A stretch of DNA of 64,000 bases from Thalia democratica (GCA_965202585.1 CBDBBG010000245.1:1-64000); one strand, 5' to 3'; counted from the first letter of the stretch, positions 4,776-43,339 are shown. Notes: generated by a model from the letters alone, not told the origin. Numbers and translations: made by a program.

Positions 4776-4819
4776 AAGTTTATGTGGACAGAAAAATTAA
4801 ACCAATCATTTAATGAATC

Positions 4820-13300: not shown

Positions 13301-15229
13301 ACTTGTTTTTAATAGACTTATAATTTTATTTATTTGATAATTCTTAATCATTTTTCTTAAAAACAAAACTCAAGTGTTAATAGATTTTGACTTGAGTCTA
13401 ATCAAAGTAGTTGTATTATTTTCTAATGAAACTATTATTCAAACGATAGTCTAAAATTTAGTTTGTTGAAAAATTTTATATTACTACGTTACAGTGGTTT
13501 CCATATTAGAAAATTCATGTTAATCTACTATGTAATTACTATAAATAGGCAATGTTTAATTACAAGAAAATACAACGAAAGTTCTTATCAATGACGTCAC
13601 AAGTTGCATTAAAAATTTGATGTTTTTATAAATAACTTCCGAAATATGTATTTTTAAACATTACCATTTTTATTGAAATTAATGTTTAAACTTTGTTTAA
13701 GTATTATACTATATTTAAACATATATTGTTTTTAAAAGCAAGTCACTAGTTGCAAAATAATGATTACTACTTGTTGTTTTTTAATTTTATCTTCAACGTA
13801 TATATAAAGTTATATGTATAAAATATAGTTATATTTATAAAACACATTTAAAAAGTTATTAAAATTTCCAAAAAAAGCGTTATTAAAGGTTTTAAACTTT
13901 ATAATTGTACTTCCTTGCTCTATTTTTTACAAAGGCTATCTGTCAAATACTAATCTATATTGTTGCATTTAAATTGTGGTGCAACTACTTAAACTATGTA
14001 TCATTTCACATATTGTATAAATCATTTTACGAGTAAGAACTTAATTAAATAGTTTATTCAAACTCGCATATGCAATAAAACTGAACCACCGTAAATTTTA
14101 TTTTTTAACTAACTTTTCCTCAATTTATTATATTTTAGATCAAATAAAACACTTTTAATTGTGTTAGTAAAAGCTATTTTTTAATTTTTATTCAACTTGT
14201 CAATATATCTTAATTTAGTAAGCTCAAGAAATCTTAAACTAATATATAATTATAAAGGACCTATTTAAGTAATTTAATAATCAAATAGACTTTGTTTTTA
14301 TTTAATTATGTTAGTTTTTATGTTAGAATTTAATTTTTGAAAAGCTCTAGGACACATCATAACATAAGTATCTTTAAAGCTTTATTTTTAGATTAAAAAA
14401 TATATACACTAGGAATTCTTGATTAGGCACTTTTTGGATGTCTTTAAGAGTAAGAATACTTTTTATTTGAAATAATTTTTATGTGGACATCATAAAAAAC
14501 TTTTTCTGCACTAGAGCTTAATATATAAAATTAATAATTTTGTTAAGAAAATGGTCTAAAGTATAATAGTATGAGGTGTGAAAAAAAATATTAGTTAATT
14601 TAGTGTAGTTTTAAAAAAAGTTGTTAATTTAATTAAAGTTATAATGTTTAATAACTAAAAACATCACAAAATGATAATAGAAATATTAACATCTCTAAAA
14701 TAATAATTAACAAGGTATTCAAAGTCTCAAATTAACTAATTATAGTTGCTATAAAATCTAAAAACGCCCCGATATCGTTGTAAGCAAAGATTGTTAGTCT
14801 CTACATAATTGTTGTTTTTATTTAAGCTTGTAAAGTATCTAAATTTTACTGTAAACAGTATAAATTAAGTTCAAGGCTAGGTTAACTTTTTAAACAATTA
14901 ACTAAAATATACATCAAAAACATAGAAATTTAACAATAGTTTAGATTTTAGTTCTCTATAAAAATTTTCATTTTAAAGACAAGCAATAAAAAAAGTAGTA
15001 ATATCAAATTCATATAAAGTACATATTTGAAATAACATAAAATGTGTTAAGTTATTAAAATGGTAGTTTTTAGTTTAATAACTTAAGTTTAACAGTTTAT
15101 AGACCTATAGTATAACATAAAATATAATCTTCTAAAAGGTTATTAAATTTTTGCTTATTAAGATTAAAAATAGTTTTCAGTTTATAATTATGATCTTACA
15201 TTGTCAAGAGATATCTTCAACTTTGTATG

Positions 15230-17730: not shown

Positions 17731-20700
17731 TTCTACATCTAAATTAAAATTTTTTTAATTTTTTTCAAGCCAAGTTCTGTGACTTATACTTAATAATAAT
17801 AAAAAATTAACATAAAAAAATTCCCATAAAAAATACCACATAGTACAGTGGTTAAAAACATTTTACCGCCCAATTCATGGAAATATGGTTGAAGATCCAG
17901 TTTATTATATACAGATATAGTGTACGGCATTTTGTGATTTTGTTCAATGACCTCACCACAAAAGAGAACTCGGTTGGTTCTCGCTTTTTTAAACGTTTTG
18001 CTTTTTAAATTCTTTATGTTTAAACGACAAAAATAATGGTTAGCAAATTCGTAACATAGCAGGACTAACAAAAAGATAACACTTTTGTTTAAAACTGGTT
18101 TAAAATATTTAATTGTAGAGCACAAAACTTAGCGATTTTGTTTAATTACATCACTACAAAAAAGGACTCAGGTAGTGAAAGTTCAAGTGAAGATTAATAA
18201 AAACTGTACAGCACAAAAGAAGTAGGAATGACTGTTCCAAGAATTAGGGGTTCGAGCAAAAGAATAATGAAATTTAATAAAAGAAACAACTCCCTGTCTC
18301 GGATTAGTGATGAATAATTACCTAATATACAGATAGACATTTTAACTTAATTACAAATATGATTTTTATTTTTAAACCACGTAACACGGTGGTCTTGAAA
18401 TATTCACAAATTAGAACACAACAAAATGATTTGGTAGATCTGGTTTATAATATATTGATAATGTACAAGATATTGCAATTTTTTTCAATTACATCACTAC
18501 TAAAGAGAATTCAGATATCGATTATATCTTTTTAAAGTTAATGTTTTTAGATCATTCAAAAAATTGTGATCAATACATATAAAAACCTTTAATAATCTAA
18601 TTATGTAACATAATTGTTGATAGTAAAACACTTTGATAGATAAACCGAGCGCCACTCTAAACTTTAAACCTTTTAATTGCGATTAAAACGCAATGCAAAA
18701 ACTAAATGTAAGAAACGTGGATTCAACTAAAAGATTAATTAAAATAAATAAAGGTAACAATTCCTTGTTTAGGATTAGTAATTAATAACCACCTACAATT
18801 AAGATACGCGTATGAATTCTGGTTCAGTAAAATCAGCTTCAAGTTTAAACCACTTATTACATTACAGTGGTGTGCAAATACTCAAAAACTGGATTGGTAA
18901 TTATTGTCAATGGAACAGGTTTTCATATACAATTATAGATTACAAGTTTTTGTGATTTTGTTCAACAACGTCACTCCAAAAGAGAAACAAAATGATTCTC
19001 TCTTTTTATTTTTATTTTTTAAACTGTATGTGATCAGTAGATACATGTATAATATCTACAAATGTATAATTATACAGCAGAATTGTTGGTAGAGTAAAAG
19101 ATGTTGAAAATTTTAAGATGTTTTAGTTTAAAGATGATAAGAACCATTGTATTGAGTACAAGCTACTACAAACAAAAGAAAAACAATCATCATAAAATCA
19201 ACACTGATGTAGTTGTTTAACTTTATAAGTGACAGTAATATTCAACATGCACAATGAACAGCAACACCAGCGTGTTTATTTGCGTATTTGGTAGTTGATA
19301 AAACAAACTATGTGCAAAACAACTTTTAAATTAGAGTGTTAGAATGTTAACTAACTCGAGTTCCTTTTTATCAACTTGTTATTCGAGGAAAGATTGACAA
19401 AATTTTTTCTGTAGAGCACAAAAGAGTAGGATCCATTAGATCTAAGAATTGATATTTAAGCAAAAGACTACTGTACTAGAATAGATGTAACAAATCCTCG
19501 TCTCGGATGAACAGTTACCTAGCATGCATACACGCATGTTAACTTTTTGCTTTCAAGGATGATTTTCATGTTTTTAACCACATAACACAGTGGTCTGCAA
19601 ATTTTCACAAATTCTCATAGAACATTGTATTTAGTTGATCTGGTTTATTATATACAAATATAATGTACAATATGTTTTCATTTTGTTCAATTACGTCATT
19701 ACAAAAGAGAAATCACTAGGTTATTTATTTTCAATTTTTTACTTTTCAAATTGTATGTGCTCAGTAAATACATGCATAAAAATCAACAACAAAAAAAGAA
19801 ACTGCATGCATTAATTATAGTTGAATAGGTATCTGCCTAATAGTTAAGCTCACTTTATATTTGTATAAAAATATTCTAAAACGAAACTGAAAGCTACCTA
19901 CGTCACTAAAACTTCAAAATGATCAATTTATCAAAATCTTCTACCAATGAATACTTACAATATATGAATATATCTTCTACAAGTACTTTCAATACAAAGA
20001 AAGATATTTACCAGTATAGTTTTCGAATTTTCCACAACAAATCTTTAAATCAAACGTAGTTGAAAAACAAGTAAAATAATTTAAAATCCTTTTGTTAGCT
20101 GGTTAAAATAAATTTATCAGCATGTTTTGAGTTGTTAAACATAAAGGAAATGCTTAAATTAAAACAATTTAACAATAATAGATACAATTATATTACAGTT
20201 TTAGAGGAAATAAAAGTTTTAGTGAAGATTAAGTAAACATTGAAGAAATTGTTTCAGTAACAAGTCAGAATAAGTACCAATTGTTAACCTTTATAATGAG
20301 TTTTGACTTTTATGATGAGTTTTCTGTTAAAAATAACACTATCCTTAATCTGAATAACTAATTTGGTGTGTACAATAGTTTTACCTGAGATTTATGCACA
20401 TTAATTTACACAATGTAAACGTTTACAAGAGTTATTTTTATGTTTAAACCAAATGAAATAAAGGGTTGTAAATTACTACGGTGGTTGGTAGAGCCATTTC
20501 TAGAACAATATAATGACTCGAGTGTTTAAAAAAAAATTAACATGCATGGCTTACAAGACAGGGCTTAACCCGGAATCAAACAAGTGTTGTTTAAGCAAAG
20601 ATTACTGAGTATGAACTTAGTGGAAAACTATGCTACTTGCCATAAAGGGATAAGTATTAATTTTCCGTTTACAAGAAAGTACTGAATATTTTAGCCACAT

Positions 20701-21221
20701 GACACAGTGGCTTGCAAATAAGAGTAGCATGAAACATAAATAGTAAGCTCTGACTAATCTGTTTTATATATACAGTTATGGAGTACGAGGTTTTGCGGTT
20801 TTGTTTAATTACGTCATGAAAAAGATAAACTAGTAGATTCTCTCTTTTAAATGTTATTTAAAAATTTAAACATTCAAAATATCGTGAATAGTGAATTTGT
20901 GTGCAAATATTAAAAAAATATTTTTACGAAGTACAACTGTTGACAGAGTAAATGAAATTCGAGAACTGAAAGATTAAATATTCGCATGTTAACTACCTCG
21001 AGTTCGTTTTTATCAACTGGTTGGTCGTAAAACTTCGAGTAATGATTGACAAAAATAAAGTAAAAAGATTAGGATTAACTGGATCTAGTAAACGTGGATT
21101 CAACCAAAAGCTTATTGATTTTTAAACAATGGTGGCATACTCCTTGCTTCGGATGAGTGATGAACAGTAAACTCAGCATGCAGACACGCATGTTAACTTT
21201 TTGAAGACGATTTTTATGGTT

Positions 21222-21274
21222 AAACCACATAACACAGTGGTCTGCAAATATTCTCAACCTATTCCATAGCTAAT
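21222..21274 (-). ncRNA. Representative predicted small RNA unit (unique 5' segment + Sm-like motif + stem-loop)
   Basis: Predicted AUUAGCUAUGGAAUAGGUUGA-GAAUAUUUGCAG-ACCACUGUGUUAUGUGGU; TATA and GTGACGTAATTGAAC lie upstream on the minus strand. Inferred only. Confidence 0.4.
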
Positions 21275-21379
21275 GGTATTATTTATCCAGTTTCTATAAA
21301 AAGATATAGTGTACAATATTTTGTGATTTCGTTCAATTACGTCACTACAAAAGAGAATTCGGTTGGTTCTCTCTTTTTT

Positions 21380-23037
21380 CAGGGTTGCCACTCTTTGAGC
21401 CAAAAAATCTTCCCTGAGTGACCAAAAATTTCCCTGAGTAACCTTAAATTTCCCTGAGTTTCCCTGAGTATTTTTTCAAATCTTAAAAAAAAAAATTTCT
21501 CTTCTAACACAAATTATTAATACCTCATTCTCATTTTTCTTCTTTAATAATAAAAGGAAGGTTGTATGTGTATGCTTCTGCATTAAATTTATGAAAAACT
21601 GTTTTCAAAACTCAATCTTAAAAGGTTTAAACCAATTTAAAATTTGAAACTAAATTTTTGCACAACTTTGTGTAAACTTGTTAGTTAACTTTCTACATAA
21701 AAGAATAAAGTTTAATTTGTTTAAAATTTTAATTGACAAAATTTCTTAAGCTATAACAATAATTTCACATGAAGAACTCACTTAAATGCATACATAATAA
21801 CTTCATTATGATTTGTATGTCTTTCCTAGCAACTGTTCTGAATGCAGTAAATAAAACTTAAAAGCTTAACATTATTGTAAAAAAACCTGCAAAAAGAAAG
21901 TTTAAAGAAATAGCTTAAGAAATATCTCATATCAAAGTACAACTTAATACCTAACAACTGATACAAAATAATCTAAAATTAAATTTTTTTTATGTCTTTT
22001 AGATGTTCATACACAATCTGTTTTAAATAATTGAAAACATAATTTTGATTTTAAAAGAATTTCACATTACCTAATAAAAAAATCTTAATACTGTTTTTTT
22101 AAGTATGCAATTTCTAAATCAATAGTTTTAATTTTATTTTCAAGTTTATTTGCTTTGTCCTTAGCAGCTATTCCTCTTGCTAACAATTCTTTCATTGCTT
22201 CTAAAATCAGACTGTTTGTTGGCATCTGCAGTATATTTGTCATAGTCTTCATTCAAACATTTGAGTTGCTTTGTAAGTTTACTTTTTTGTTCTCCTAACT
22301 TGCTCAAAGCATCACCTTTATTTGGAACATTTTTAGCAAAGCGCTGTTGCTCAAGATATGCAAAATATTGGGCCCTAGAAGATTTTACAAATGTTAACAA
22401 TTCAGAACTTAGTTCAACTGTGCTTGGTTCTAGACTGTTTGCATATAGATGATCTTTGATCATTCTTAGGGACCTTATTGTCATCTCTCCCATATTAGTT
22501 GATATTACTTCCTTATTTAAGCTAAAGCCCCGTTCAACACTTGCCTGGCCATTGTGAAGCACAAAAACAGCCTCAAGGACTCTTGTTAAATCTGTATACT
22601 TGCTTGGGATATCGAGTGTGTCAAAATAAAAGGTGTCTAAACTGTGACTTTTTTCAAGAAAATTTTCAAAAAGTATTTGAGTGTTAGAAGAACTTAAAAA
22701 TCAATGTATTGATTTATGCTGTCATCAACCTCTTTTGCTTTTAGTATCTTCATGCTGACAAGTTGTTGGACCAACCTTGTAAAGTTTCTGACACAACGGT
22801 CTTTACCCATTCCAATTAGACATGCTGGATTTTTTAACAAAAGTAATACAACACTAATCTGTATTCATTTTAATTTTTTTACTGAAAACAAGTAGTTGTA
22901 AACAAATAACAAATAACTTCCCTGAGTTTCCCTGAGTTAAAAGAAAAATGCCAAAATTCCCTGAGTTTCCCTGAGATTTTCTACAGTTTGAAAATTTCCT
23001 GAGATTCCCTGAGTTCCCTGAGTGTGTGGCAACCCTG
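21380..23037 (-). mobile_element. Internally deleted hAT-related DNA transposon (probably hAT5-like)
   Basis: TIR CAGGGTTGCCAC/GTGGCAACCCTG; many subterminal TTCCCTGAG repeats; T-run duplicated on both sides relative to empty sites in sister units. Minus-strand remnant LDTFYF..VLHNGQASVERGFSLNK (22161-22820). Confidence 0.85.
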
Positions 23038-23479
23038 TTTTTTAAAGGTTTTACTTTTGAAATCGTATGTGATCAATAGATATATGTATAAAAATCTACA
23101 AAAATATATATTTAGCAGAACTATTCATAGAGAAAAAAAAACTTGAAAAACTTAAAAATCTTACAGTATTACTTGCAAAACTTATAATAAAAAAGTCATT
23201 TTCAAAAACATATAGAACATTTATGAACATATAAATATAGAAGCAGAAAAGCTAATAGCTTCGAGTTTCTACTTAAATATGTAAAACAAAACACCTGGTA
23301 ATAAATTAACTACGATGAATTTATAAGTACTTTTTTCTATATGTTTAGTATTGAACACATAATCTGTCTTTGATAACCATCAAGACACAAATTCAAAGAT
23401 AAATAAAAATCACAGCATTATACAGAGTATCACACTTAATAATTGATAGCCCTTGTATGTTAACACAAACAAATACTAA

Positions 23480-23794
23480 TTAACTTATTTTAAAGTTTAG
23501 TTTTTTTATAAATTCCAACATTCAAAGTCTTTTAAACTATAAAAGGAACATTTTCTGAAAGTTTGAGGTCTCTACCTTAAAAAATAAAGGAGAAAATAAA
23601 TTTTTAATTATTCTTTAAATTTCCGAGAAAATTGACCCCAAAAAACTTGCTGTCTATACGTTTGTATCAGAAAATTTTTGTTAAAGTTACAATATCTCAA
23701 AAGTTAGATAAGATTTTTTAATTCTATGAAAACTGGCTTGTAGCTTTCATTTAAGATCAAATTTTATTTTTAGTAAAAATATGTCGGACCGCCC
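23480..23794 (-). mobile_element. TTAA-ended non-autonomous element fragment (Kolobok-like), related to 48565-49171
   Basis: Ends GCCC|TTAA. It is reverse-complement similar to 48565-48790 (ctacaagccagtttt, ggggtcaattttctc, ctcaaactttc) and interrupts a spacer that is intact at ~26880. Confidence 0.55.
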
Positions 23795-26700
23795 TTAAGT
23801 CCTTAAACAAAAAACAACCATCATAAAATCAGCACTAATGTAGTTGTTTAACTTTACAAGTAACAGTAATATTTTACATGCAGATTTAACAGCAACACCA
23901 GCGTTTATTTATTTGGTAGTTAATACAAAACAACTTTTGATTTGATAATATTTTAAGACTGTTAGAATGATATCTAACTCGAGTTCGTTTTTATCAAACT
24001 GTTGGTCGAGTAAAAATTGAGAAAGAATTTTTCTGTACAGCAAAATCGGATGTGATAATTGGGGTTCAAGCAAAAGATTACTGATTTTTAAGCAATGGTG
24101 ACAAACTCCTTGCTTCAGATGAGTTATGAACAGTTACCCACCATGAAGACACGCATGCTAACTTTTTGATTACAAAGATGATTTTATGTTTAAACCACAT
24201 AACACAGTGGTCAGCAAATAATTCTATGGACTTGCAAATGCATTTGAATCCATGATCCGGTTTTTATATACGAATATCGTGTAAAATATTTTGTGATTTT
24301 GGGGAATGACGTCACCACAAATAAGAATTCGGTTGGTTCTCTCTTTTTTAAACGTTTTGCTTTTTAAACTCTTTATGTTTAAACGACAAAAATAATGGCT
24401 AGCAAATTAGTAACATAGCAGGACTAACAAAAAGATAAAACTTTGGATTACAACTGGATTAAAATATTTAATTGTAGAGCACGAAACTTAGCGATTTTGT
24501 TTAATTATGTCATTACAAAAATAACTCAGGTAGTTAAAGTTCGAGTTAAGATTAATAAAAACTGTACAGCACAAAAGAATTAAGAAATAAATAAGATCTA
24601 AGAATTAAGGGTTCGAGCAAAAGAATAATGTAATTTAATAAAAGAACAACTCCCTGTCTCGGATTAGTGGTGAATAATTTTACCTTATTTACAGATAGAC
24701 ATAATAACCTTTAATTTACAAATATAATTTTCATGTTTAAACCACGTAACACAGTGATCTTGAAATATTCACAAATTAGAACACAATATAATGATTTGGT
24801 AGATCTGGTTTATAATATAGTGATAATGTACAAGATATTGCAACTTTGTTTAATTACATCACTACTAAAGAGAATTCAGATATCGATTATATCTTTTTTA
24901 AAGTTAATGTTTTTAGATCATTCAAAAAACTGTGATCAATACATATATAAACCTTTATGATCTAATTATGTAACATAATTGTTGATAGTAAAACATTTTG
25001 ATAGATAAATCGAGAGCAACTCTTAACTTTAAACTTTTTAATTGCGATGAAACGAATTGCAAAAACTAAATGTAAGAAACGTGGATTCAACTAAAAGATT
25101 AATTGAAATAAATAAAGGTAATGATTCCTTGTTTAGGATTAGTAATTAATAATCACCTACCATAAAGATACGCGTATTAACATTTTGTTCAGTAAAATCA
25201 GCTTCACGTTTAGACCACTTAATACAGTGGTGTTCAAATACTTAAAAACTGGATTGGTAACTATTGTCAATGGAACTGGTATTTCATATACACTTATAGA
25301 TTACAAGATTTTGTGATTTTGTTCAATTACGTCACTAAAAGAGAAACAAGTAGATTGTTTAATATTTTAAATTTAAAACATTCAAAACGTTGTAAACAGT
25401 GAAGCTGTGTGAAAATATTTTCAAAAAATTAATTTACGAAGTAGAATAGTTGACAGAGTAAAAGAAATTTGAAAACTTTATGATTAAGTATTCGCATGTT
25501 TACTAATTCAAGCTCGTTTTTACCAACCTGTTGGTCGTTTTAGTTTGAGTAAACAGGTTGATAAAAAGGAAAGTTTTCTGTACAGCAGAAATAAGGGGGA
25601 CACTAACTGGATTTAAGAAAAGTAAATTCATGTAAAACATATTTTATATACACTTATAAAGTACAAGATTTTGTGATTTTGTTCAACTACGTCACTACAA
25701 ATGAGAAACAAGATGATTCTCTCTTTTTATTTTTACTTTTTAAATTGTATGTGATCAGTAGATACATGTATAATATCTACAAATTTATAATTATACAGCA
25801 GAATTGTTGGTATAGTGAAACATGTTGAAAACTTAAGGATGTTTTAGTATATAGATGATAATAACCATTGTATTGAGTGCAAACTACAACAAACAAAACG
25901 AAAAACAATAATAAAAAAAGCAGTACTGATGTAGTTGTTTCAGTTTACAAGTAAAAGTAATATTAAACATGCACAATAAACAACAACACCAGCGTGTTTA
26001 TTTGCGTATTTAGTAGCTGATAAAACAACTATATGCAAAACAACTTTTAAATTAATAATATTTTAAGTTCTAACTCGAGTTCGTTTTTATCAGACTTTTA
26101 GTCAAGAGAAGAGCCAAGATTGACAAAAGTTTTCTGTACAGCATAAAAGAGCGGGATCTGAGAATTGGAGTTCAAGCAAATTTCTTACTTCTGTTTCTGA
26201 TTGTTAAACAATGATGACAAGCTCCGGACTAGCGATGAACAATTACATACAGACACGCATTTTAACTTTTTGCTTACAAAGATAATTTTCACGTCTAAAC
26301 CACATAACACATTAGTCTAAAAATAATCCTATAGACTTGTGAACTCACTGATTACCTTAGAAGAGTTTTTTATAAACACATACAGTGTACAATATTTTGT
26401 GATTTTGTTCAATTACGTCACTACAAAAGAGAATTTAGTTGGTTCTCTCTTTTATAAATGTTTTACTTTATAAATTGTACGTGATCAATAGATATATGTA
26501 TAAAAATCTACAAAAATATGTACATATTTAGCAGAACTGTTCATAGAGAAAACATGTTGAATAACTAAAATCTTACAGTCTAACTTGCAATACTTGTAGT
26601 AAAAAAGTCATTTTAAAAAACATCTAGAATATTTCTGAGTACATAGAAGCAGAATAACTAATAGGTTCTAGCTTCTACTTTCTACTCAAATAGGTAAACC

Positions 26701-29700
26701 TGGTAATAAATTAGCTACAATGGTTTTAAAACTACTTTTTTCTATATGTTTAGTATTGAACACATAATCTGTTTTTAATAACTACCAAGAAACGACTTCA
26801 AATAAAAATACAAATTACATATTTTCAGAGTATCACACTTATAGCGTAATTGATAGTATTTGTATGTTAACACAAACAAATGCTAATTAATTTAGTTCGA
26901 AAAAATTATCGTTTTTAGTAATAAAATATTATAGCTATGCAATCTTTATATTATGTTAATCATAGTACAGAGCACACTTTACAAAAAAGACACCACATAA
27001 AAGAACAGTTTGATTATTTTAAGTTTAATAAATTTAAGTTGTATTTTTAGGTGTACATCGTAAAAATAAATTAAATTTATTGGAATTAAGACTTAACAAT
27101 AAACAACAAAGACAAGGTTACGATTTGACAAACTATTAGATTAATAAGCAAATTAAACTGATTAAATATGTCTAAAGTATATAAATTTTTGTATTTCAAT
27201 AGAACTACTCTACTTAAATAAACAAACAATGTTTTCACCATAATTTTGAAGAAAACATTTCTTTTTATGTACAGCCACTAAGTAATGGATTACATATTAA
27301 TTACAACGAGGTTTAAATCATGCAAGTCTATCGGTGGCTTTATATTTGTATCAAGTTTTTTCTTCTTAAAATACTTTCAATAACTCACGTCATTAAACTG
27401 TTCTAAACGAATTTTCATAAATATCAACAGCATAGTTGCTCGGGGATTAGAAATGTTCATATTAATTTATTTGAACAAATTTCCAGCGCAGACTTTAAAG
27501 TTTGTTTCGACCACACAACAGAATTTGAAAAAATGTAATAACTGCGTGTTTATATTAAGCGGTAGGTAATTAACTAGGTAACTTGCTTACATACCATTCA
27601 GCATACTTTTCTATTATTAAGACAAGGTTATTACTGGTTTTGAATAGTTCTTTGTTTTTAGTATCTGAAGTAAAAAAGTTTTCATTCCACATGTTAGTTC
27701 TAAAATGTAAGGAAATGTTTTAACAGAACAGAACTTAGATTTAAATGAATGATAGTGCACAAGAATTTGCAGTTTCGTTCAATTACGTCACTAAAAAGAG
27801 AATTCGTTCGATTCTCTTTATTTTTGTTTCAATTCAATGTTTTTTAAAAACATTCAAAACATTGTGTAAAGTAAATTTGTGTGCAAATAATTTCAAAAAA
27901 AAAATTACGAAGTAGAATTGTTGACAGAGTAAAAGGAATTTGGAAACTTAAAGATTAAGTATTCGCGTAAAAACTGACGCAACTATGTTTTATCAACCGG
28001 TTGGTCGTAAAAGTTCAAGTAATGATTAACAAAAATAAAGTTTTCTGTAGAGCATAAAAAAGTGGGATTAACTGGATCTAAGAAACGTGGATTCACAAAA
28101 AAGATTTAAGAAATTAAATAAAGGGAACAACTGCTTGTTTCGGGTTAGTAATGAATAGTCATCTACCATAAAGATGTTCGTATTAACTTTTTGTTCAGAA
28201 AGATGAGCTTCATGTTTAAACCACGAAATACAATGGTGTGCAAATTTTAATAAAATGGCTGAGGAACTGGTATCTAGTATTAACTTATAGATTACAAGGT
28301 TTTGTGATTTTGTTTAACTACGTCACTACAAAAGAGAAACCGAATGATTTTTTCTTTAAAATTTTTGTAGTTGTTTAACTTCACCAGTGTTTTTTTGCGT
28401 ATTTGATAGCTAATACAAAACAACTTTTAATTCAATAATATTTCAAAGAACGTAATCATGTTAAATAACTCAAGCTAGTTTTAATCAACCTGTTATTTGA
28501 GTAAAGATTGACAAAAAGGTTTCTGAACAAAAGAGTAGGATCCATTGGATCTAAGATTTTGAAGTTTGATCAAAAGATTATTGTATTTTAAACAAATTTG
28601 ACAAGCTCATTATTTCGGATTAGTGATTGGCAGATACCTTATATGCAGACACGCATGTTTGCTTACAAAAGTGATTTTCATGTTTTAACCACATAACACA
28701 GTGGTCAGCAAATATTCCCCTCGAGTCTTTAATTATAAATAATTAATTGCACTTTTCATAAACAGATATAGTGTACAACATTTTGTGATTTCGTTCAATT
28801 ACGTCACTACAAAAGAGAATTCGGTTGACTCTCTCTTTTTTAAATGTTTTACTTTTTAAATTGTATGTGATCGATAGATATATGTATAAAAATCTACAAA
28901 AATATGTATTTAGCAGAACTATTCATAGAGAAAAAATGTTAAGAAACTTGGAAATCTTACAGTCCAACTTGCAATACTTCTAGTGAAAAAGTCATGGTTA
29001 AAAATATCTAGAATACTTATAAATATATAGAATATGTATATTTATATATAACTACGTTTAAACCACATAACACAGTGGTCGGCAAATACTTACACTAGGA
29101 GAGGAGTTTCATGATTTGTAGATCTGGTTTTATATAAAGTGATAATGTACGAGATTTTGCGATTTTGTTCATCTACGTCACTACAAATGAGAATTCACAT
29201 ATCGATTTTATCATTTTTAATTTTAATTTTTTTGGAAGATTTAAAAACCTGTGATCAATAGACATAATAATCTTATTATGTAACATAACTGTTAAGAGTA
29301 AAATATTTTGAAAGATCAACCGAGGATAACTCTAAACTTCAAACGTTTAATTGTGATGGAACAAATAATGAATTAAGAGAGTAAAACATGTTAAAAATCT
29401 ATGTATGGTATAGTTCATCTTGCAATAATTTTAGTAAGGAATTAAAATGTAAAAACAACTAGTTTTCAATACAAATCAAATTCTATTATATTTTTTATCG
29501 AATTACTTTAATTAATTTGTTTAATATTGAGCATATACATCTCACTAATCAGTACTTTAAACAATAGGCACTACTCTGTACTTAAGAATTTAAAACAATA
29601 AAGCTGGTAACAATTTAACTACAATCATTGAATTTTTTTCTATATCTTAAGTATTATATACATAATTTCTATTTAATGACCATAAAAGTTACTGCTACCC

Positions 29701-31474
29701 ACCTTAAAATAAAATAGAAAATTTTATATTTTTAACACAAGTTTCACTGTTGTTGACATAATAAATATTGACTAATTAACAGCTTTTTTAGTGAACTAGC
29801 ATGTAATCATTTTTTTTATTTTTACACAAATAAATTCCAAGTAACTTATTTCGAAAATAACGTTTTTTTCAATAATAAATTTTCAAACAAAATGCTTTAT
29901 AGAAAATAACAACTGTTGTATTGAGCGCAAACTATAACAAATTAAACAAAAACAGTCATCATAATATCAACACTGATGTAGTTGTCTAACTTTACAAGTA
30001 ACATTAATATTCAACATGCATATTGAACAAGAACTTCAGTGTTTTTTTTTTGCGTACTTGATAGTTAATACAAAACAACTTTTGATTTAATAATATTTTT
30101 TATTAAAGTTAGCATGTTAACTAACTCAAGCTCATTTATATGAACCTGTTAGTCGTAAAAGATCTAGCAAAGATTAACGAAAGTTTTCTGTAAAAAAACA
30201 ACTTTTGATTTAGTAATGTTTTAAGAGACTTCGCATGTTAACTCGAGTTTGTTTTTATCAACCTGTTGGTCGAGTAAAGATTAATAAAAAGAAAGTTTTA
30301 TGTACAGCATAAATGAGCAGGGTCCATTGGATCTGAGAATTCAAGCAAAAGATTACTGATTTTAAACAATGATTACAAAATTCTTACTCTGATGAACAGT
30401 AACCCAGCTTACTGACACGCGCATTAACTTTAACGCTTACAAAGATGAGTATCATGTTTAAACCACATAACACAGTGGTCAGCAAATGTCATCCTGTCTA
30501 TGAAAATATTGAATTTTTGATTCCGGTTTAATATATACAAATATAGTGTAATATATTTTCTTATTTTGATCAATTACGTCACTACAAAAGAGAATTCGGT
30601 TGGTTCTCTCTTTTTAAACGTTTTGCTTTTCAATTTCTTTATGTTTAAACGACAAAAATAATGGCTAGAAAATTAGTGGCATAACAGGACGAATAAAAAG
30701 ATTACACTTTTGTTTACAGCTGGTTTAAAATATTTAATTGTAGAGCACAAAGGTTTAGCAATTTTGTTCAATAAGTCATTGCAAAAAAGAACTCAGTTAC
30801 TAAAAGTTCGAGTAAAGATTAATAAAAATCTGGACAGGAAAAAGAAGTAGGATTGACTGTTCTAATAATTAGGGTTTAGAGCAAAAGAATAATTAAATTT
30901 AATAAGAGAAACAATTCCCTGTCTCGGATTAGTGATGAATAATTACATAATATACAGATAGACATATCAACCTTTTAAATTACAAATAAGATTTTCATTT
31001 TTAAGCCAAGTAACACAGTGGTCTTGAAATGTTCATAAATTGGAACACAATAAAATGATTCGGTAGATCTGGTTTATAATATAGTGATAATGTACAAGAT
31101 ATTGCAATTTTGTTCAATTACATCACTACTAAAGAGAATTCAGATATCGATTATATCTTTTTTAAAGTTAATGTTTTTAGATCATTCAAAAAACTGTGAT
31201 CAATACATATAAAAACCTATAATAATCTAATTATGTAACATAATTGTTGATAGTAAAACATTTTGATAGGTAAATCGAGCGCAACTCTAAACTTAAATCT
31301 TTTTAATTGCGATGAAACGCAATGCAAAAACTAAATGTAAGAAACGTAGGTTCAACTAATATATTAATCAAAATAAATAAAGGTAACAATTCCTTGTTTA
31401 GGATTAGTAATTAATAATCACCTACCCATACAGACGCGCACATTAACTTTATGATTACACCTATTAGTTTCATG

Positions 31475-31531
31475 TTTAGACCACATAACACAGTGGTCTA
31501 GAAATATTCACCGCATGAAAAGGAATGTCAT
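31475..31531 (-). ncRNA. Representative predicted small RNA unit
   Basis: Predicted AUGACAUUCCUUUUCAUGCGGU-GAAUAUUUCUAG-ACCACUGUGUUAUGUGGUCUA; perfect 8-bp stem TAGACCAC/GTGGTCTA (31477-31500). Inferred only. Confidence 0.4.
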
Positions 31532-32157
31532 GGTTAGGTAGATCTGGTTTTTATGCTAGTGTACAAGGTTTTGCGATTTCGTTCAAATACGTTACCATAT
31601 AAAATTATTCAGGTCGTAAAAATTCAGGTGAATATTAATAAAAAAATGTACATCACAAAAGAGTGGGATCCAATGGACCTAAGAATTGGGGGTTTGAACG
31701 AAAAAATACTGAATTATAAAAAACAAAATTAATAAACTCGTTGTCGCAAATGAACAGTTACCTACCATACAAACATGCATATTAACTTTTAGATTACAAT
31801 GATGATGTTATAACCACATAACATAGTAGTCGTTTAATAATCTTATCGAATTGCAAACGCACTGATAACCTTGATCCGGTTTTTAATATACATATACAGT
31901 GTACAACATTTTGCGATTTCGTTCATCTACGTCACTATATAAAAATATTCAGGTCGTAAAAGTTCAGGTAAATTTTAATAAAAAAATGTACAGCACAAAA
32001 GAGTGGGATCCATTGGACCTAAGAACTGGGATTCAAGCGAAATATTACTGATTGTTAAACAAAGGTAAACAACTCATAATTTCGGATGAGTGACGAACAG
32101 TACCTGCCATACAGACACGAATATTATCTTTTCGCTTACAAAGATCATTTTCATGTT

Positions 32158-32212
32158 TTAATCACATAACACAGTGGCCAGTAAATATTCTTGCCCATGG
32201 CCAAAGTTAATT
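32158..32212 (-). ncRNA. Representative predicted small RNA unit
   Basis: Predicted AAUUAACUUUGGCCAUGGGCAA-GAAUAUUUACUG-GCCACUGUGUUAUGUGAU; the stem is imperfect. Inferred only. Confidence 0.33.
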
Positions 32213-33169
32213 GCATTATTGATCCAGTTTAATATGAACAGATATAATGTACAACTTTAAATTTTTATTCAATTACGTCACCACAAATAAGATTTCGGTT
32301 GATTCTCTCTTTTTTTCTACTAGAGCCACATAACATAGTAATTTGTAAATTTAAGCAACTGCTGTTATAATAATGCAATATATAACTTATTTATTAAACT
32401 AGTTTTTAATATACAATTAAAAAGAGAAACATTTTACGATTTTGTTCGATTAAGTTAATACAAATTCAGTCGATTCTTTTTTTATTTAAAGTTTTGAAGT
32501 TGTATGTGATCAGCATATTAATTACATATTTTTAAATGTTGAAGAGTCTACAAATATTTGAATATTTTACAGAACTTTTACAGATATTTTTGAAAGCAAA
32601 ACTGTTCAATTAGATTAAGTGTTGAATGACTTTAAATAATTTGTTTAGTTATTAGCTGATAATTAGATGATGATACGTCTCACATTGGTATATTGAATAT
32701 ATATTATAAGGTCTTAGTCTCTAGTTAAAAAGTTAAAACAAAGTTAAATAACTTGTTTAGTGTTTAGCATATACATCTCACCAAAGAGGTAAATTGAATA
32801 TATAAGAGCAGAAAAATTATCTCTAATTAAGAAGTTAAGACAAAAAAGGTGGTAATAATTTAACAACAATCATTGTATAATTTTTGTTTTACTTTATCTT
32901 AATAATTGAATACATAAATTTTGATTAATGACCATCAAGATTAGTGATAACCAACTTAAAATAAAAAAGAACATACTTAATTGTCACTGTTGAAATAATT
33001 AATAATGACTGACTAATAGCTTTTATATTGAACTAGCATGATTTATTTTTGTTCACAAATAAATTCCAATTAACCTATAGCGAAAATAACTTTTTCTTTT
33101 AATAATAAAATGCCAGAGCAAACAAAAAACTTTAAAGATAATAACAAACATGTTGTATTGAGTGCAAAC

Positions 33170-36100
33170 CAGTGGCGTCGCGTGGTACTTTTGTTAGGGG
33201 GTGCTGCAGATTGAGTCGTCAACTCAAAAAAATCCCCTAATTTGAAACATTAAAATAAAACTCAAGAAGTTAAAGAGAATAGGGAAAATTTTAAGCTAAA
33301 AGTCTTTAAGATATTAGCTTAAATGCTTTTTAATATGAATATAAAAAAAAAACATGATATACTTAAAAATATATAGTTTTTACTTTTATACTTAAATTCA
33401 AATATACGAGAAATTTATTTAAAAGTACTTAATGAAGGAAATAGATTACTAAGTTGCTAAAAATGTTTATCATAATACATAAATTTACAATATATCATAC
33501 ATTGATAAAAAGTTTGTATGTATTAACAAAACTTAATTATAAGAGCAAAATAAGTTTTATTTTTACAGATTAACAAAATATTTTTTTTTTCATGTTTAAA
33601 TAACTTCTCACAATACAACTTTTAAAAAGATTTAAAAACTACGTATTTAACTATTCAAACATCAATTCTTTTATAAACAACAAAAAGAAAATATGTCTAC
33701 CAAAATGAAATTGAGGATCAGAAAATATTATTATAACTATTTTGTAGATTTTAAAGTTAACTCAAAAAGTAAAGTAACTTTTAAAGCAATTAAAAAAAAA
33801 TTGCTTTAAACAGTAACTTTGTTTCTTTTGAGTTACTTACTTATGTTTCATTAGTAAAAAATAACATGATAATTGAAAAAAAATCACACTAGAAGGAATT
33901 TTCTTTTAAAACTTTTACAATGCAACACAAAAGTATTGAAAAAGTTATAAATATTACAGCAGCAAAAAAAAATTGACTTTATTCTTAAATTAGTTTTACA
34001 CACTAAAAAAATTAAATAAAATTCTACATACGTTTTGAAGCATATATAATTTTATATCACTTATAAAAAAATAAAAAGCAAAATTTAGTCAGAGTTAGCT
34101 TTCAATATAGATAATTAACAAACAAAACAAAACTTGTTTAAAAGGTCTTTGTTTGCAAATTAAATAACTATAAGTTGTAAAATAACCTTTAAAAATTTAT
34201 AACTAGGATCAAAAAACAATTATCTAAAACAACTTAGTTCTACTAAAAACATAATTAAAGTTAAGTCAGAAGTCTGTTCATGATAATAAGAAAACTATTT
34301 TTTACTTATATAGGTAAAATGCATCCTTCTTTCTTTATTCTAACAAACATTTCTAATACCTTCGAATTAAAACCATCACAGTCACTAACTAGACCTCGAC
34401 CAATTGCTAATACACTCAAAGAATTAAGTCTTGTCTGGCCTAAAACCTCTTGGGTAATTGAAATATCTGGTGTTGGTCTGCTGTTTTTAACTTAAGCTTT
34501 TCAAATTCAGACAAAGCATTTATATCAATGCGTTTAAGCTGATCCACAGTCCATTCACTATAAATTGTAGTTTGCATGTTATTATTTTTAAAAATAACCT
34601 AAAAAATTAATTATGCTTTTGTTAAACTATTTGTGAAATTTTTACAAGGTACTGATATTTCAAAGCTAATATTTTTTTAAAAATAAAGTATCTTGTAATA
34701 TATAAGTAACGATTTCATATAATTTCTAATGTTAATTTTTGTTATAAAAAAATTATAGACCCCCTATGTCCTTAACACACTTTCTATATACTTTATATTA
34801 AATATTTTTTTCATTTAGAATAAATAGATGAAACTTGTTAGTTTTAATACAAATTGATATAAGTTTAACTATGAGAATTGTATTTTGTTGTGTAAGTAAG
34901 TTTATCTAAAAACTTTAATGTATTTGCCTAAAAATCAAATAAAGATAAACAATTAGTTTGTTTTTTGTTAAGTCAGTTTGTACTTCCCTCTCATTATAAA
35001 ATTTTAGTACTCTCCAACTTTAATTAACTATATGTCAAAATTCAATTCAAAGAGCAATTCAAAACAATTTATAGTTTACTTAAAAGTTTACAAATGTAGC
35101 TCAAGCTGTATAAACTTATGCATTAATATCAATTTAAATTTTATGTCAACCATACAGAAATCATGGAGTGGTATCATAGTTCATTAAAAAATGTTTTTGT
35201 TATTTTGATCAGAATCACATAAATGCTTAAAATAAAAATAAAGCAACAACTTAATGTAAGGAATTTTACAGAAAAAAAAACTATTTCACTATATCTTACC
35301 TTTTCAATTTTTATCAGCAATTGTTAGCAAAGTTTTTTAACAAAATAATTAATATTTTTATTTTTTAAGAACAGAATTTTTAATTTTTGAGTTTTTTTTT
35401 AGTTTAAAACAATTTTTTTTTATATCTTTCATCATAATATTGTTCTAAATATTTTTACACTAAGTTGAGAAAACTTTAGGTTGTAGATCTCAAATAAAAA
35501 ATTTTAATTTTTTATGCACATTTTATTATCAATATAAGGCAGTTACATTTAAAACTTGCATATAACTTGTTAGCTACATATTGCTTATTTCAATACTAAA
35601 ATTATTAAAAAACAAAATTAGTAATATTAAAAAGAAATTCAATTATTTTATGTAAATAAGATAGGTAGAATTTGATTTCTTTTACTTTAAAGTAATCTGG
35701 AATAAAGAATTATGATGTATGAAAATAAATTCTTAATGACCATTTTTTAAAGAATTATCAATAAAACACACACAAATTTATTGAGTTTTGAATTTTTTTA
35801 AATAATGTCCTTTAAAAACTTATTAGAACTTTTGACTTGTATAGTTTTTTTTTGTATATGTGTTGACCATTGGGTTTTGATCTTGCACTTTCATCTCAAA
35901 TACTAAACTTTACTTTCACTGTATTCAAGTTGTTTACATTTAGTAGTTATTTCAATGTATAATGTTCACAAACTAATTAACAGTGTATTCATATTCACTA
36001 TATTCTTAATATTCAGTTTAAATAAACATAGCGCTGCATTGAATGCAGCTCTAAAAATAAGCTTTTAAACAACATTTTGTATAGGAAGTTTGTATATGTT

Positions 36101-36314
36101 TAAAATGCAGCTCACACTGTTTTAGCTTGCAGCGCCAGCGATTTAACGAATATTTGAAAATTGAATGTAAAATTTGAAAAACTAACAAATTTATGGTTAA
36201 GTTCAATGAAAAAAAGAAGGAAACTGAAACAAAGGGTAATTTTCTTTTTTCTTCTTTTTCTTTTTGAATAGGTGGGACTGCAGCTCCATTGTGCCACCCC
36301 ACGCGACGCCCCTG
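33170..36314 (-). mobile_element. Non-autonomous hAT element (3145 bp)
   Basis: TIR CAGTGGCGTCGCGTGG / CCACGCGACGCCCCTG (15/16 match); perfect 8-bp TSD GTGCAAAC; the flanks rejoin into the array spacer ttgtattgagtgcaaac..aacaaa. Confidence 0.95.
34295..34577 (-). pseudogene. hAT transposase remnant: N-terminus fused to the C-terminal dimerisation region
   Basis: MQTTIYSEW..EFEKLKLK(N)SRPTPDISITQ is joined directly to EVLGQTRLNSLSVLAI..FNSKVLEMF..KERRMHF; the catalytic core is absent. Confidence 0.7.
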
Positions 36315-36322
36315 GTGCAAAC

Positions 36323-37690
36323 AACAAAAAATGAAAAATGAAACAATCATCACAAAATCAACATTGATGTAGTTGTTCAACTTTATAAGTAACAATAATA
36401 TCCAACACGCGTATTGAACAACAACACCAGTGTTTTATTTTAATTAGTACTTAATACAAAACAACTTTTAATTTGATAATGTTTTAAGAGACTTCGCATG
36501 TTAACTAACTCGAGTTCGTTCTTATCAACCTGTTAGTCGAGTAAAACTTGACAAAAGTTTTCTGTACAGCATAAAAGAGTGGGATCCATTGGATCTTAGA
36601 ATTGGGGTTTAATCGAAATATACAAAGATTTTATACAAAGGCAACAACTTCTGTCTTGGATGAACGATTACCAACCATGAAGACACGCATGATGACTTTT
36701 TTCTTACAAAGATGAGTTTTATGTTCAAACCACATAATACATTGGCCTGCAAATATCCTCTAAACTTAAAAGTATACAAAATTATTGATTCCGGTTTAAA
36801 AGATACAAATATAGTGTACAATATTTTGTGATTTTGTTCAACTACGTCACTACAAAAAAGAATTCTGTTGATTTTTTTTTTAACGTTTTACTTTTTAAAT
36901 TGTATGTGATCAATAGATATATGTATATACAAAACTACAAAATTATATAAAAATACAAAAGAAATTGTATGCATTAATTATAGTTGAGTAAGTATCTGTC
37001 TAAGAGTCAAGCTCACAATATTTTGTATAAAAACTTATACAATTTTTTACCAATGAATATTTACAAAATATGAATATATCTCTTACTTTAAGTATTTTCA
37101 ATGCAAAGAAAGATATTTACTAGTATAGTTTTTAAATTTTCACAACAAATACTTAAATGAAACGTAGTTGAAAAACAAATACAACAATTTAAAGCCTTTT
37201 ATTGTTTGGTTATAAACATATTTAATAGCATATTTCGAGTTGTAAAACATTAAGGAGATGCTTAAATTAAAGCAACTTAACAATAATAGAAACAATTATT
37301 TTACATTTTAGAAGAAATAAAACGTGTTAGTGAAAATCAAGAAAGCAATTGAAGAAAGTATTTCAGTAACAAATTGTATATAAATATCATTTTTTAACCT
37401 TAATGATGAGTTTTGAATTTTAGATAAGTTTTCTATTTAAAATAACACAATGCTAAATCTGAATAAAGTGTTTTGTGTGTACAATAGTTTTACCTAATGC
37501 AGATTAATTTACACAATGTAAACGTTTAGAAAGTTATTTTTATGTTTAAACCACATGAAATAAACGCTTGCAAATTACTACGGTAGTTGGTAGAGCCTTT
37601 CTTAAAACAATATGATGAATCGAATTATTATATAAGTATTTAAGGCCCACTAAATATATAGATTTAAAAAAAAATTACTAGGTTCTAATC
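36323..37690 (-). repeat. Distal segment of the cassette array
   Basis: One full unit (cassette 36759-36786, ACGTCAC at ~36844) plus a spacer duplicating ~19740-20500. Confidence 0.88.
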
Positions 37691-41070: not shown

Positions 41071-43239
41071 ATTCTAAAAATAAAAGTTTCAATTTTTATA
41101 AATATTGCACAAGTTTGGTTTATTTTATATTTATAATTTAAAAATTTTATATATTTTTTGCATGAAATTTTAAATAATGTATAATACTTGTAATGAAGTT
41201 ATTTGAACTTGTTTAAAGTCAGTCAAAACAACATTTTACTTTAATGCAACTAATGCAGCAATTTGTTTGCAATGTAATAAGCGAAGCTTTTTTTTTCAGA
41301 TCAAAAATTTGCAGTTTTTTCATAAAGTATATAATTTAAACACCTTAAAGTAAAAAAATTGTTATATTTAGTTAAAAATAAAGTAATAACTTTACTTTTT
41401 CACAACAAATTTGTTAAAATTTAATCTAAAAATTTGTAACAGGTTTTAGACCTTACCAAACCTAGGCTTAGGTAGAACTATATTTCGTAATAGTCTTATA
41501 GAAAGATTTCACTATGTATTTTTTATCATAACTGTTTTATATTGTTTATAGTACTTACACATTTTTTTGATTACATAAACGTTTATTTTTTTCTTATTTA
41601 CATTAATGTAGTTAAAAATGGTAATTAAAATTCCATTTTAAAATGATTAGAAAAGCAAAATCCAAAATTATAATTAAAATTTTCCAAAAATAAAAACTTA
41701 TGTTAAACAATTAAAATCATACCTGGGTGTTTACTTGAATTAAAGGAATTATACTTGTAACCACATTCTAGTGGTTTTTAAATTGTTGGTTCTACCAATG
41801 GTTGAGCTTTTTAATTCTCCAAAAAATTCATATTTGATACAAGAAAATTAAACCTACATTTGCTGTTTTGTAGCCAGTTACGTCACGAGAAGACTAAATT
41901 GATGATGCTAACTGTTTAATTAACTCTGAATGGAAACATAAATACTTACATGTCTAAAACTTATACTGTTTATGAAATTATTTTTGCTTATAGAAATTAA
42001 AGTTCTATATAGTTTCTCACTCTTAAGATCATAAAACGACTTAATTAACTTTTAAGTTTTTATTTTTATTGTTGTTACTGTTTAATAAATATTTCTGCTA
42101 CACACTTATTTTATAACTTTTTTGAACTAATCTGTTTAAGGGATAGTATTATTTATTTTTTCAAATTCAATAGTAACAAGTCAAAAACTAACGTGTTATA
42201 AGATAAAATAAAATTTTGGGAAATTTTGAAAAATAAATATGATTAGTTCACTTTTTTTTTTAATTCCTGCATTCAATACTACTTAAATATAAAGTTCGTA
42301 AAATACTAACCAGTTAAATTATTTTTTTATTAGTCTTGTAATACTTATTTTATATTTTAGAATATTTAAAACGTTAAGATTAGTATTTTACGAGCTAAAA
42401 ATTGATGTTTTTACTCTTCTAGTTTAAATAAAATTTAATATACTTTAATGAAATTAAAAACTAATATACTTTTTTTTTTGATTAAGTTTAGTTCCAAATA
42501 AAAAAGTTTTAAAGAATGTTTCTGAATTTTAAGAACACGAAATAACTACAGTAAATTTTAAATTTTTGTTTTATAAATTTAATTTTATGCAGAAATTTAA
42601 TCACACTAGTTTAGTATCTTTTTATTTAAACAAATTGTTAAAAGGATAAAAATAACTGTTGGCGAAAGGTTTAACTTTTATCAAAAAAAAAAACAAAAAT
42701 CAGTTTAAGTTAATCAAAACTTCTAGAAATAATTTTAAAAGAAATTTTGTGAAAACTAAAATTTTTATACCAAATTTATTTAAGATACTAAAGTGACGTC
42801 AGTACAGTTGCAACAACTTTGTCGCAATCATAGTAATTTTGTAATTTTGCGATCTAATATGCCAAATTAAAAAAAGTTATATTTACTTCATTTTATGAAG
42901 TTTTTTAACAAAATATTTATTACGACTTTTATTTTGTCTTTTCCCGTAGTACTGCTTGCTTTTTTTTTTTCTTTTTATTGTGTTACACATAAAAACAAAT
43001 AAAATATTGAGTGATAAAATTTACTAATATGAATTGTGTCTATTAGTCATGGTTTTTCTATCTTTTTATGTTAATTAAATTTTCTTTTTGTACTTAAATT
43101 TAACGTGTTATAAATTTTATAAAATAATTTTACTTTAAAGTTAACTAAAATTATATTATAAGATTAGTGAAAATAAAAATTCTAAATAGCTAAATTCCTT
43201 TTTCTAACAGTTGAAATTTATATGGTTTTTGTAAAAAAA

Positions 43240-43339
43240 NNNNNNNNNNNNNNNNNNNNNNNNNNNNNNNNNNNNNNNNNNNNNNNNNNNNNNNNNNNNN
43301 NNNNNNNNNNNNNNNNNNNNNNNNNNNNNNNNNNNNNNN
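43240..43339. other. Assembly gap (100 N)
   Basis: Run of exactly 100 N. Confidence 1.

Follow-up and report, generated by a model that had tools for sequence, protein, structure and literature searches.

Between 17.8 and 37 kb of the stretch of DNA analysed here (the window: 64,000 nucleotides (nt) of Thalia democratica, GCA_965202585.1, CBDBBG010000245.1:1-64000, an unplaced contig of an 801-Mb assembly, referred to below as C254) lies an array of related units, in each of which conserved flanks enclose a short segment, the cassette, that differs from unit to unit. The array is probably a cluster of about 23 independently promoted small-RNA genes of the small nuclear RNA (snRNA) type, lying on the minus strand and possessing variable heads. 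With spacing like that of the U6 and U1 genes, transcription would start about 12 nt into the cassette, and the product would be an RNA of about 50-55 nt, made up of some 17 variable 5' nt, a terminal hairpin and, between the two, a short U-rich motif. The cassette would then combine a promoter spacer, fixed in length and free in sequence, with a paralogue-specific 5' end. That this 5' end pairs with other RNAs, as the 5' end of U7 does, is a guess.

An iterated nhmmer profile, seeded with one unit, returned 27 unit matches of ~160-390 base pairs (bp) between 17835 and 36881, all on the same strand (the plus strand as the sequence is shown), in a region that is AT-rich (24-29% G+C). A cassette is present in 23 of the 27, with lengths, in order, of 29, 38, 31, 29, 30, 32, 30, 30, 38, 31, 29, 31, 21, 27, 29, 29, 38, 31, 31, 30, 30, 41 and 28 nt; intact units have cassettes of 27-32 nt and the outliers of 21, 38 and 41 nt are degenerate copies. 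The left flank occurs six times in the window at three or fewer mismatches, against none expected by chance. Column entropy peaks sharply at 1.15-1.70 bits at profile columns ~261-300, compared with 0.38-0.96 elsewhere in the 390-column unit. These results bear out the initial annotation, which had described conserved units with a hypervariable cassette of fixed length and had anticipated such an entropy peak; all twelve cassette positions and sequences that it quoted agree with the unit table. Its claim that the cassettes are mostly unrelated holds insofar as the 23 units fall into about 16 cassette types (numbered T1, T2 and so on below), but not all cassettes are unique, as several have been copied by 6.3-kb segmental duplications. 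The term ‘repeat-spacer architecture’ did not survive: each unit has its own minus-strand promoter, and the units are irregularly spaced and have spread by segmental duplication and by unequal recombination. Nor are they contiguous repeats, being 0 to ~4 kb apart and interrupted by unrelated DNA and a transposon.

Searches for a known identity were negative. Rfam, at gathering and at permissive thresholds, gave no relevant match in the window, the array or the 9-14 kb stretch, in line with the earlier remark that no described element was known to have such a layout. A tRNA scan of the region found none, Tandem Repeats Finder reported no array at the units, and a Pfam search of the window returned retrotransposon domains only. 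Internal duplication of the unit is not significant (score 44 versus 32 +/- 6 for shuffles). Two further candidates were rejected by eye: a coding function for a 36-codon minus-strand frame in the downstream block, which is broken by insertions and deletions and lacks its start codon in many copies, and a V(D)J-type signal at CACAGTG, where spacer and orientation do not agree.

For comparison, U6 and U1 loci of the same genome were located with Rfam models, and the flanks were read at four distinct U6 and four U1 loci. Upstream of U6 stand an A-run and a GAGAG..CTCTC inverted repeat, then TGACGTCA and then a TATA box, with the GACGT of TGACGTCA 82 nt and the TATA box 31 nt before the start. 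U1 lacks a TATA and has TGACGTCA, whose GACGT precedes the start by 72-74 nt. On the minus strand, the units of the array follow the order A-run, AGAGAA..TTCTCT, TTTTGTAG, TGACGTAA, ~36 nt, TATATAA, ~48 nt, AUUUGC, hairpin, which matches the order in U6 at near-identical spacing. The units thus have an upstream promoter of their own, in which the GAGAG..CTCTC repeat, the TGACGT(C/A)A box and TATA are matched in U6, and the box in U1 also. In the unit taken as canonical, all of whose features lie on the minus strand, the inverted repeat AGAGAA..TTCTCT with its A-run occupies 21352..21372 and is a putative distal promoter element by its likeness to the U6 upstream repeat. It is followed by the TGACGTAA box, which resembles a cyclic AMP response element and was compared with TGACGTCA of U6 and U1 (21337..21344), and by a TATA-like box ~44 nt past the TGACGT box (21293..21303), which reads TATATAA in most units. 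The initial annotation had taken the unit in the plus orientation; the U6/U1-type promoter and the pairing of the hairpin make it read as a minus-strand gene instead, and of the two strand arguments the promoter likeness is stronger than the strand bias within the hairpin.

Some further observations concern the U6 and U1 genes themselves. Their promoter code in this genome consists of the GAGAG..CTCTC repeat (U6), TGACGTCA at about -80, a box resembling TAACCGACG or TAACCATCG, and TATA (U6 only). The U6 genes are often found in inverted pairs 0.7-6 kb apart, and the U1 sequence begins AAACUUACCUG.

The spacings transferred from the two genes, TATA+31 (U6) and GACGT+73 (U1), both put the start 17-19 nt upstream of GAAUAUUUGC; measured from the GGATC side, transcription would begin ~12 nt inside the cassette. 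By this spacing the cassette, which occupies 21254..21283 in the canonical unit as delimited by U6/U1 spacing and entropy, can most simply be regarded as a TATA-to-start spacer of ~12 nt (21272-21283) followed by a variable RNA 5' end of ~17 nt (21254-21270). In the four distinct U6 loci the TATA-to-start spacer is likewise variable in sequence and constant in length, so that this part of the cassette pattern would be ordinary. The remainder would sit where the specificity-giving 5' end of a small RNA is expected, a placement that fits the earlier suggestion of a specificity-encoding segment.

The predicted RNA (21220..21271, ~50-55 nt, its two ends placed by the U6/U1 spacing and by the hairpin) comprises a variable head, AUUUGC, a hairpin of 5-7 bp (CCAC..GUGG) with a well-conserved 8-nt loop, and UUU/AAAC. 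The U-rich motif GAAUAUUUGC (21244..21253), of which AUUUG alone is conserved and which is not a canonical Sm site, adjoins the hairpin AGACCAC-UGUGUUAU-GUGGUUU (21222..21243). On the minus strand 85.5% of the cells of this hairpin pair, many of them as G.U, a value reached by 1 of 500 shuffles; among the non-Watson-Crick cells of 96 units, 81 are G.U on the minus strand against 21 on the plus. A consensus fold of the whole minus-strand unit contains only the CCAC hairpin, with no structure in the ~230-bp block downstream. Despite the U6-like TATA, the sequence makes RNA polymerase II more likely than RNA polymerase III, because no T-run follows the hairpin and a run of four or more T lies inside the predicted 5' segment in 17 of 95 units. 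The downstream block (20995..21221 in the canonical unit) equals the promoter in conservation and is rich in short palindromes (AACTCGAGTT, GGATCCA..TGGATC, TGTACA and GTTAAC). Its role might be that of an enhancer or of a region for 3' processing; neither short units nor diverged members contain it, and short units of ~160 bp, consisting of promoter, cassette and hairpin, occur on their own.

Divergence of the cassette was followed in a local set of ~300 kb drawn from one chromosome (C1) and from the contigs C192, C254 and C368, in which 127 unit matches were found, 96 of them with a cassette. The 96 cassettes form about 50 mutually unalignable groups. In unit pairs with 75-85% identity in the flanks, the cassettes are 36-39% identical, approximately random for AT-rich DNA, whereas in pairs with 90-95% flank identity they are 70% identical; as had been proposed, this is not the ordinary drift of a satellite. 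Within types, the cassette diverges 1.3-1.5 times faster than promoter and hairpin (0.195-0.23 versus 0.15), and the proportion of variable columns falls from 59% in the spacer to 48% in the 5' segment and 34% in the RNA body. Types T6 and T7, which are older, have preserved the 15-18 nt beside AUUUG, whereas their ~12 nt towards the TATA are scrambled, the variable columns numbering 13 of 13 on the TATA side against 10 of 18 near AUUUG in T6, and 7 of 11 against 5 of 18 in T7. In T4, the cassettes differ by 0.25, compared with ~0.5 for the DNA just outside the unit.

Across the whole assembly, the DNA search found the unit at C1:13.47-14.81 Mb and on the three unplaced contigs. The 20-nt hairpin of the array type, at two or fewer mismatches, gave 64 matches against none for the control; 63 lie within that region or on those contigs and the remaining one is a chance match. 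For a looser signature, TGACGTMA-N88-112-CCAC-N6-8-GTGG, the genome yields 621 matches (254 + 367), compared with three for a reversed control. Among 100 of these 621 places that were listed, ~72 lie in C1:13.39-14.29 Mb, mostly on the minus strand, and ~27 are dispersed, all on the plus strand, over C1:2.3-5.8 Mb at intervals of tens to hundreds of kb. The plus-strand loci of C1:2.3-5.8 Mb share a start, TGACGTCACCAAACAATTTCTAGC.... Diverged loci missed by the profile are also present in the window, with TGACGT(C/A)A at 9262, 9831, 10784, 11617, 13599 and 41885, all on the minus strand, and there are more of them at the C1 loci that were read. All that survives in them is the box, followed after ~45 nt by a TATA and after ~110 nt by a hairpin of the CCAC/GUGG type, the hairpin being preceded by AAUUUGA or AAUUUAA. 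These fixed distances in otherwise unalignable copies are the best evidence that box, TATA and hairpin would together form the working unit, and the array is a young, homogeneous branch of a superfamily of several hundred genes.

The units of this branch have been moved and mixed as DNA. Six blocks of ~1.2 kb, three in the window and three on C1, arose by segmental duplication and share three or four cassettes, arranged in the same order, with inter-unit spacers as conserved as the units; cassettes are thus not made anew for each unit. Two units of the window are chimeric, with breakpoints inside the unit (24190-24350 and 31314-31612), which is direct evidence that units recombine unequally or convert one another. 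Beyond the unit boundaries, the DNA of non-sister copies cannot be aligned.

The alternative of most weight, with an appreciable though minor probability, accepts the same genes but denies any specificity to their 5' ends: the cassette would be an unconstrained spacer plus a dispensable leader, and the copies would either share one job performed through AUUUGC and hairpin, or be decaying duplicates kept alike by gene conversion. The faster divergence of the cassette within types and the gradient of variable columns from spacer to 5' segment to body speak for it, and flank shuffling by recombination is visible in the chimeric units. The heads are, moreover, no more accessible than chance, with a predicted unpaired fraction of 0.64 against 0.63 in shuffled heads, and no complement of the cassettes turned up in the genome (two cassettes) or in 290 kb of local DNA (all cassettes). 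It accounts less well for the 15-18 nt kept near AUUUG in T6 and T7 beside a scrambled TATA side, for the restrained cassette divergence of T4 relative to the DNA outside the unit, and for the cassette length held at 27-32 nt in intact units; a family with a single job would, in addition, normally conserve the RNA in full, like the U6 genes of this genome with their identical copies.

Two other explanations dispute the gene itself. A very unlikely one places it on the plus strand, with an RNA of ~125-155 nt that starts near the CCAC hairpin or the cassette and runs through the U-rich AUUUUGUGA to AGAGAA..TTCTCT and a T-run, which would act as a terminator of the RNA polymerase III type. Almost every full unit does have a hairpin followed by T4-T8, a conserved sequence of 235 bp lies upstream of the CCAC hairpin in this orientation, and wobble cells in the second hairpin slightly favour the plus strand (about 37 versus 23). 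The supposed terminator, however, is the reverse complement of the A-run and GAGAG..CTCTC found upstream of U6, and is thus a shared promoter element rather than the end of an RNA. The plus strand has no TGACGT/TATA pair upstream, pairing within the CCAC hairpin is better on the minus, and short units and diverged members dispense with the 235-bp ‘promoter’ yet keep box, TATA and hairpin in minus-strand order. Least credible of all is a degenerate satellite or non-autonomous transposon with a fast-evolving internal segment. The units are indeed repeated, co-oriented, AT-rich and non-coding, and stand among real transposons, but their spacing is irregular with no array reported by Tandem Repeats Finder, no terminal repeats or target-site duplications were seen, and the DNA past the unit boundaries is unalignable between non-sister copies. 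This candidate was set aside on two grounds: the confinement of array-type copies to a 1.35-Mb region and three unplaced contigs, a distribution that fits a transposon poorly, and the host snRNA promoter architecture held within the unit.

Several results weigh against a cluster of snRNA-type genes with meaningful heads. When six types are pooled, the head is not significantly more conserved than the spacer (variable columns: 52 of 109 versus 41 of 69, p=0.17) and varies more than the RNA body (p=0.02). In types T8 and T9 the pattern is the opposite of that in T6 and T7, which counts against a function of the head. Covariation in the hairpin is weak, the 17 cells with double changes being reached by 55 of 500 shuffles, and the G.U strand bias could stem in part from mutational asymmetry and the shared ancestry of the copies. 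The consensus of the U-rich motif is (G/A)AAUAUUUGCAG, and a canonical Sm site, RAU(3-6)GR, is found in 1 of 95 array units; by eye, three of the eight listed diverged members read AAUUUGA in this comparison. The units lack the TAACCGACG-like box, which adjoins TATA in U6 and stands ~40 nt before the start in U1, and for this reason the use of snRNA-specific factors is an inference. The small-RNA-gene interpretation also leaves the conserved ~230-bp block unaccounted for. As to expression, contigs of two DNA-like runs and two marine metatranscriptomes were compared with 18000-23999; over this interval the metatranscriptome contigs fall only on 21380-23040, with traces at 23400-23800, both within an inserted transposon, and none on the units. 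A search for RNA runs holding a unit returned none, and two patterns used to look for relatives in metagenome contigs gave no match. Transcription, RNA ends and polymerase are inferred from the sequence.

A guide function of the variable heads is plausible. In its strongest form, which can be put forward only tentatively and as rather improbable, the several hundred individually promoted short RNAs, with a constant U-rich and hairpin handle and heads of 17-35 nt, would constitute an antisense guide library on an snRNA/U7-type scaffold, and might direct cleavage, 3'-end formation or silencing of many RNAs. The initial annotation had proposed a search for cassette targets, and this was carried out in part genome-wide and in part locally. 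A 23-nt cassette, at three or fewer mismatches in the genome, matches itself only. The 16-nt core of T7, at two or fewer mismatches, finds only family members at zero or one mismatch, and its two-mismatch matches are fewer than those of the control. For all cassettes taken together, complementarity to 290 kb of local DNA, in which transposons are included, shows no excess. Given two cassettes with no match outside the family and no local excess of complementarity, perfect-match targeting of genomic repeats is unlikely. Patterns for the histone stem-loop and downstream element gave 0 and 1 match and were uninformative.

The remaining units of the window, located from the profile and the unit table, are all on the minus strand. 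The array begins with a short unit of type T7 (17835..17988; cassette 17865-17893), consisting of promoter, cassette and hairpin. This is followed by a degenerate unit of type T3 (17993..18171) with a broken hairpin and a 38-nt cassette (18054-18091), which has copies at 24352-24529 and 30618-30797, by a T1 unit (18169..18532; cassette 18406-18436) with copies at 24527-24897 and 30794-31161, and by a T2 unit (18686..19006; cassette 18884-18912) with a copy at 25049-25360. A full unit at 19352..19730 (cassette 19607-19636) and a unit at 20530..20848 (cassette 20724-20755), which belongs to a subgroup with the hairpin AGCCAC..GUGGCU, precede the canonical one. Beyond it are a full, chimeric T4 unit (23975..24347; cassette 24224-24253), in which the T4 cassette is joined to promoter DNA of the T7 type, and a full unit of a T4 variant (26071..26453; cassette 26329-26359). 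Full units with a short 21-nt cassette (27977..28357; cassette 28250-28270) and with a cassette at 28718-28744 (28466..28839) come next, followed by a short unit (29053..29214; cassette 29092-29120) and a full T6 unit (30239..30614; cassette 30490-30518). The second chimera (31314..31612) combines a downstream block of the T2 type with a different cassette (31510-31540). It is succeeded by a T4 unit with a weakened hairpin (31613..31952; cassette 31843-31872), a unit at 31952..32313 (cassette 32191-32220), a short degenerate unit with a 41-nt cassette (32324..32482; cassette 32355-32395) and, lastly, a full unit at 36506..36881 (cassette 36759-36786). Outside the array, the five diverged members with boxes at 9262 to 13599 span 9100..13600, and the sixth (41750..41885) has TGACGTAA at 41885, AAUUUAAA, and the hairpin AACCAC-UAGAAU-GUGGUU 109 nt later.

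The transposon inserted between two units (21380-23240 and 23400-23800) is present in very high copy number, with summed contig depth rising to ~5x10^5 against a few hundred on its flanks, and starts with 20-bp repeats of the TTCCCTGAGT type (21403-21459). Marine metatranscriptome contigs match it closely, a 2.5-kb contig showing 13 differences over ~1 kb; the species or a near relative is therefore present in ocean plankton samples and expresses the element. A remnant of a long terminal repeat (LTR) retrotransposon of the Ty3/gypsy type lies at 3154-6775 on the plus strand; its domains for reverse transcriptase, RNase H and integrase are spread over four separate open frames, so that its pol region is broken into pieces. 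The window further contains a 122-bp tandem repeat in four copies, 97% identical (54381-54865), and arrays of 16-34 bp units with a CGTGCAAAA(G)TG core (43907-44250 and 57378-58170), which may represent the termini of a further repeat family. At 43240-43339, 100 consecutive N mark an assembly gap or a masked stretch.

If transcribed as predicted, the units would represent an undescribed class of small RNA, with a common hairpin handle and 5' ends specific to each paralogue; its genes, hundreds in number and equipped with promoters of the snRNA type, would be concentrated in one chromosomal region of ~1.4 Mb. Even if the 5' ends are unconstrained, the family defines the promoter code of the snRNA genes in this genome (GAGAG repeat, TGACGTCA, TATA), and more than 600 loci missed by annotation pipelines and by Rfam can be found with a simple signature.

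Conserved flanks around a variable segment of fixed length are also found in CRISPR arrays and kinetoplastid guide-RNA cassettes. Unlike these, the Thalia array has no single leader-driven transcript and no short identical repeats; instead, each unit of 160-390 bp has its own promoter, and nothing suggests acquisition of the variable segments, which multiply by segmental duplication. The anatomy of the unit and the irregular spacing rule out a CRISPR-like array.

Spliced-leader RNA genes come closer, as multi-copy, clustered genes of the snRNA type whose short RNA combines a 5' part with a U-rich site and a hairpin. Their fixed GU donor has no equivalent here, just 27 of 95 units having GU at the boundary of the cassette, and GU is missing altogether from the predicted 5' part of one diverged member; the spliced-leader families of Rfam gave no match. 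On account of the missing donor, and because what would be the leader varies more than any other part, this identity was rejected.

With U6 and U1 of the same genome the units share the GAGAG..CTCTC repeat (U6), TGACGTCA (both) and TATA (U6) at similar distances. The RNA itself is unrelated, and the units have neither the TAACCGACG-like proximal box nor the T-run terminator of U6. The distribution of change is also reversed: among U6 copies the RNA is identical and the flanks have diverged, whereas in the array units the start of the RNA is the most variable part.

The genes for type-I PIWI-interacting RNAs (piRNAs) of nematodes, or 21U-RNAs, each have their own short upstream motif related to snRNA promoters (PMC6436959, PMC7917550). 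The likeness lies in the many individually promoted mini-genes, gathered in Mb-scale clusters, that carry an snRNA-related motif and yield different short RNAs. A clustering of mini-genes on this scale is found in the 621 signature matches. The Ruby motif, CTGTTTCA ~40 nt upstream of a 5' U, is present in none of 95 units, and there is no strong 5' U position, the best T column in the cassette reaching 58%. The units differ further in having a conserved U-rich motif and a hairpin after the variable part, nematode loci being without such a handle, in numbering hundreds rather than more than 15,000, and in giving no near-perfect genomic match for two cassettes. We know of no large sets of individually promoted small-RNA genes with different heads described in animals beyond the nematode piRNAs.

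U7 snRNA resembles the predicted RNA in its single-stranded 5' part, in a U-rich site directly before a terminal hairpin, and in its upstream promoter of the snRNA type. Gene clusters of U7 are present in sea urchins, frogs and zebrafish, and the deviant Sm site RUUUNUCYNG serves as the U7 criterion of Marz et al. (PMC5054213). Some 67 histone 3' stem-loops are listed in the Thalia genome, and a U7 system is therefore to be expected there. In the units, a hairpin with a 5-7 bp stem does directly follow the U-rich site. However, RUUUNUCYNG occurs in none of 95 units, a UCUUU box in the last 20 nt in four of 95 against 5.7 expected by chance, and the Rfam model RF00066 has no match at E<=10 in 17800-37000, its best score in the genome being 25.6 bits against a cut-off of 34, with none in the cluster. 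Identity with U7 was rejected on these three counts; the units differ, besides, in having hundreds of members and 5' parts of dozens of unrelated types, rather than one anti-histone sequence. The U7 scaffold has been engineered for antisense therapy. If the heads are indeed guides, the library would be an independently arisen functional analogue of the nematode 21U-RNAs or of U7; the layout of U7 would, if the units are transcribed as predicted, be in natural use beyond histone mRNAs.

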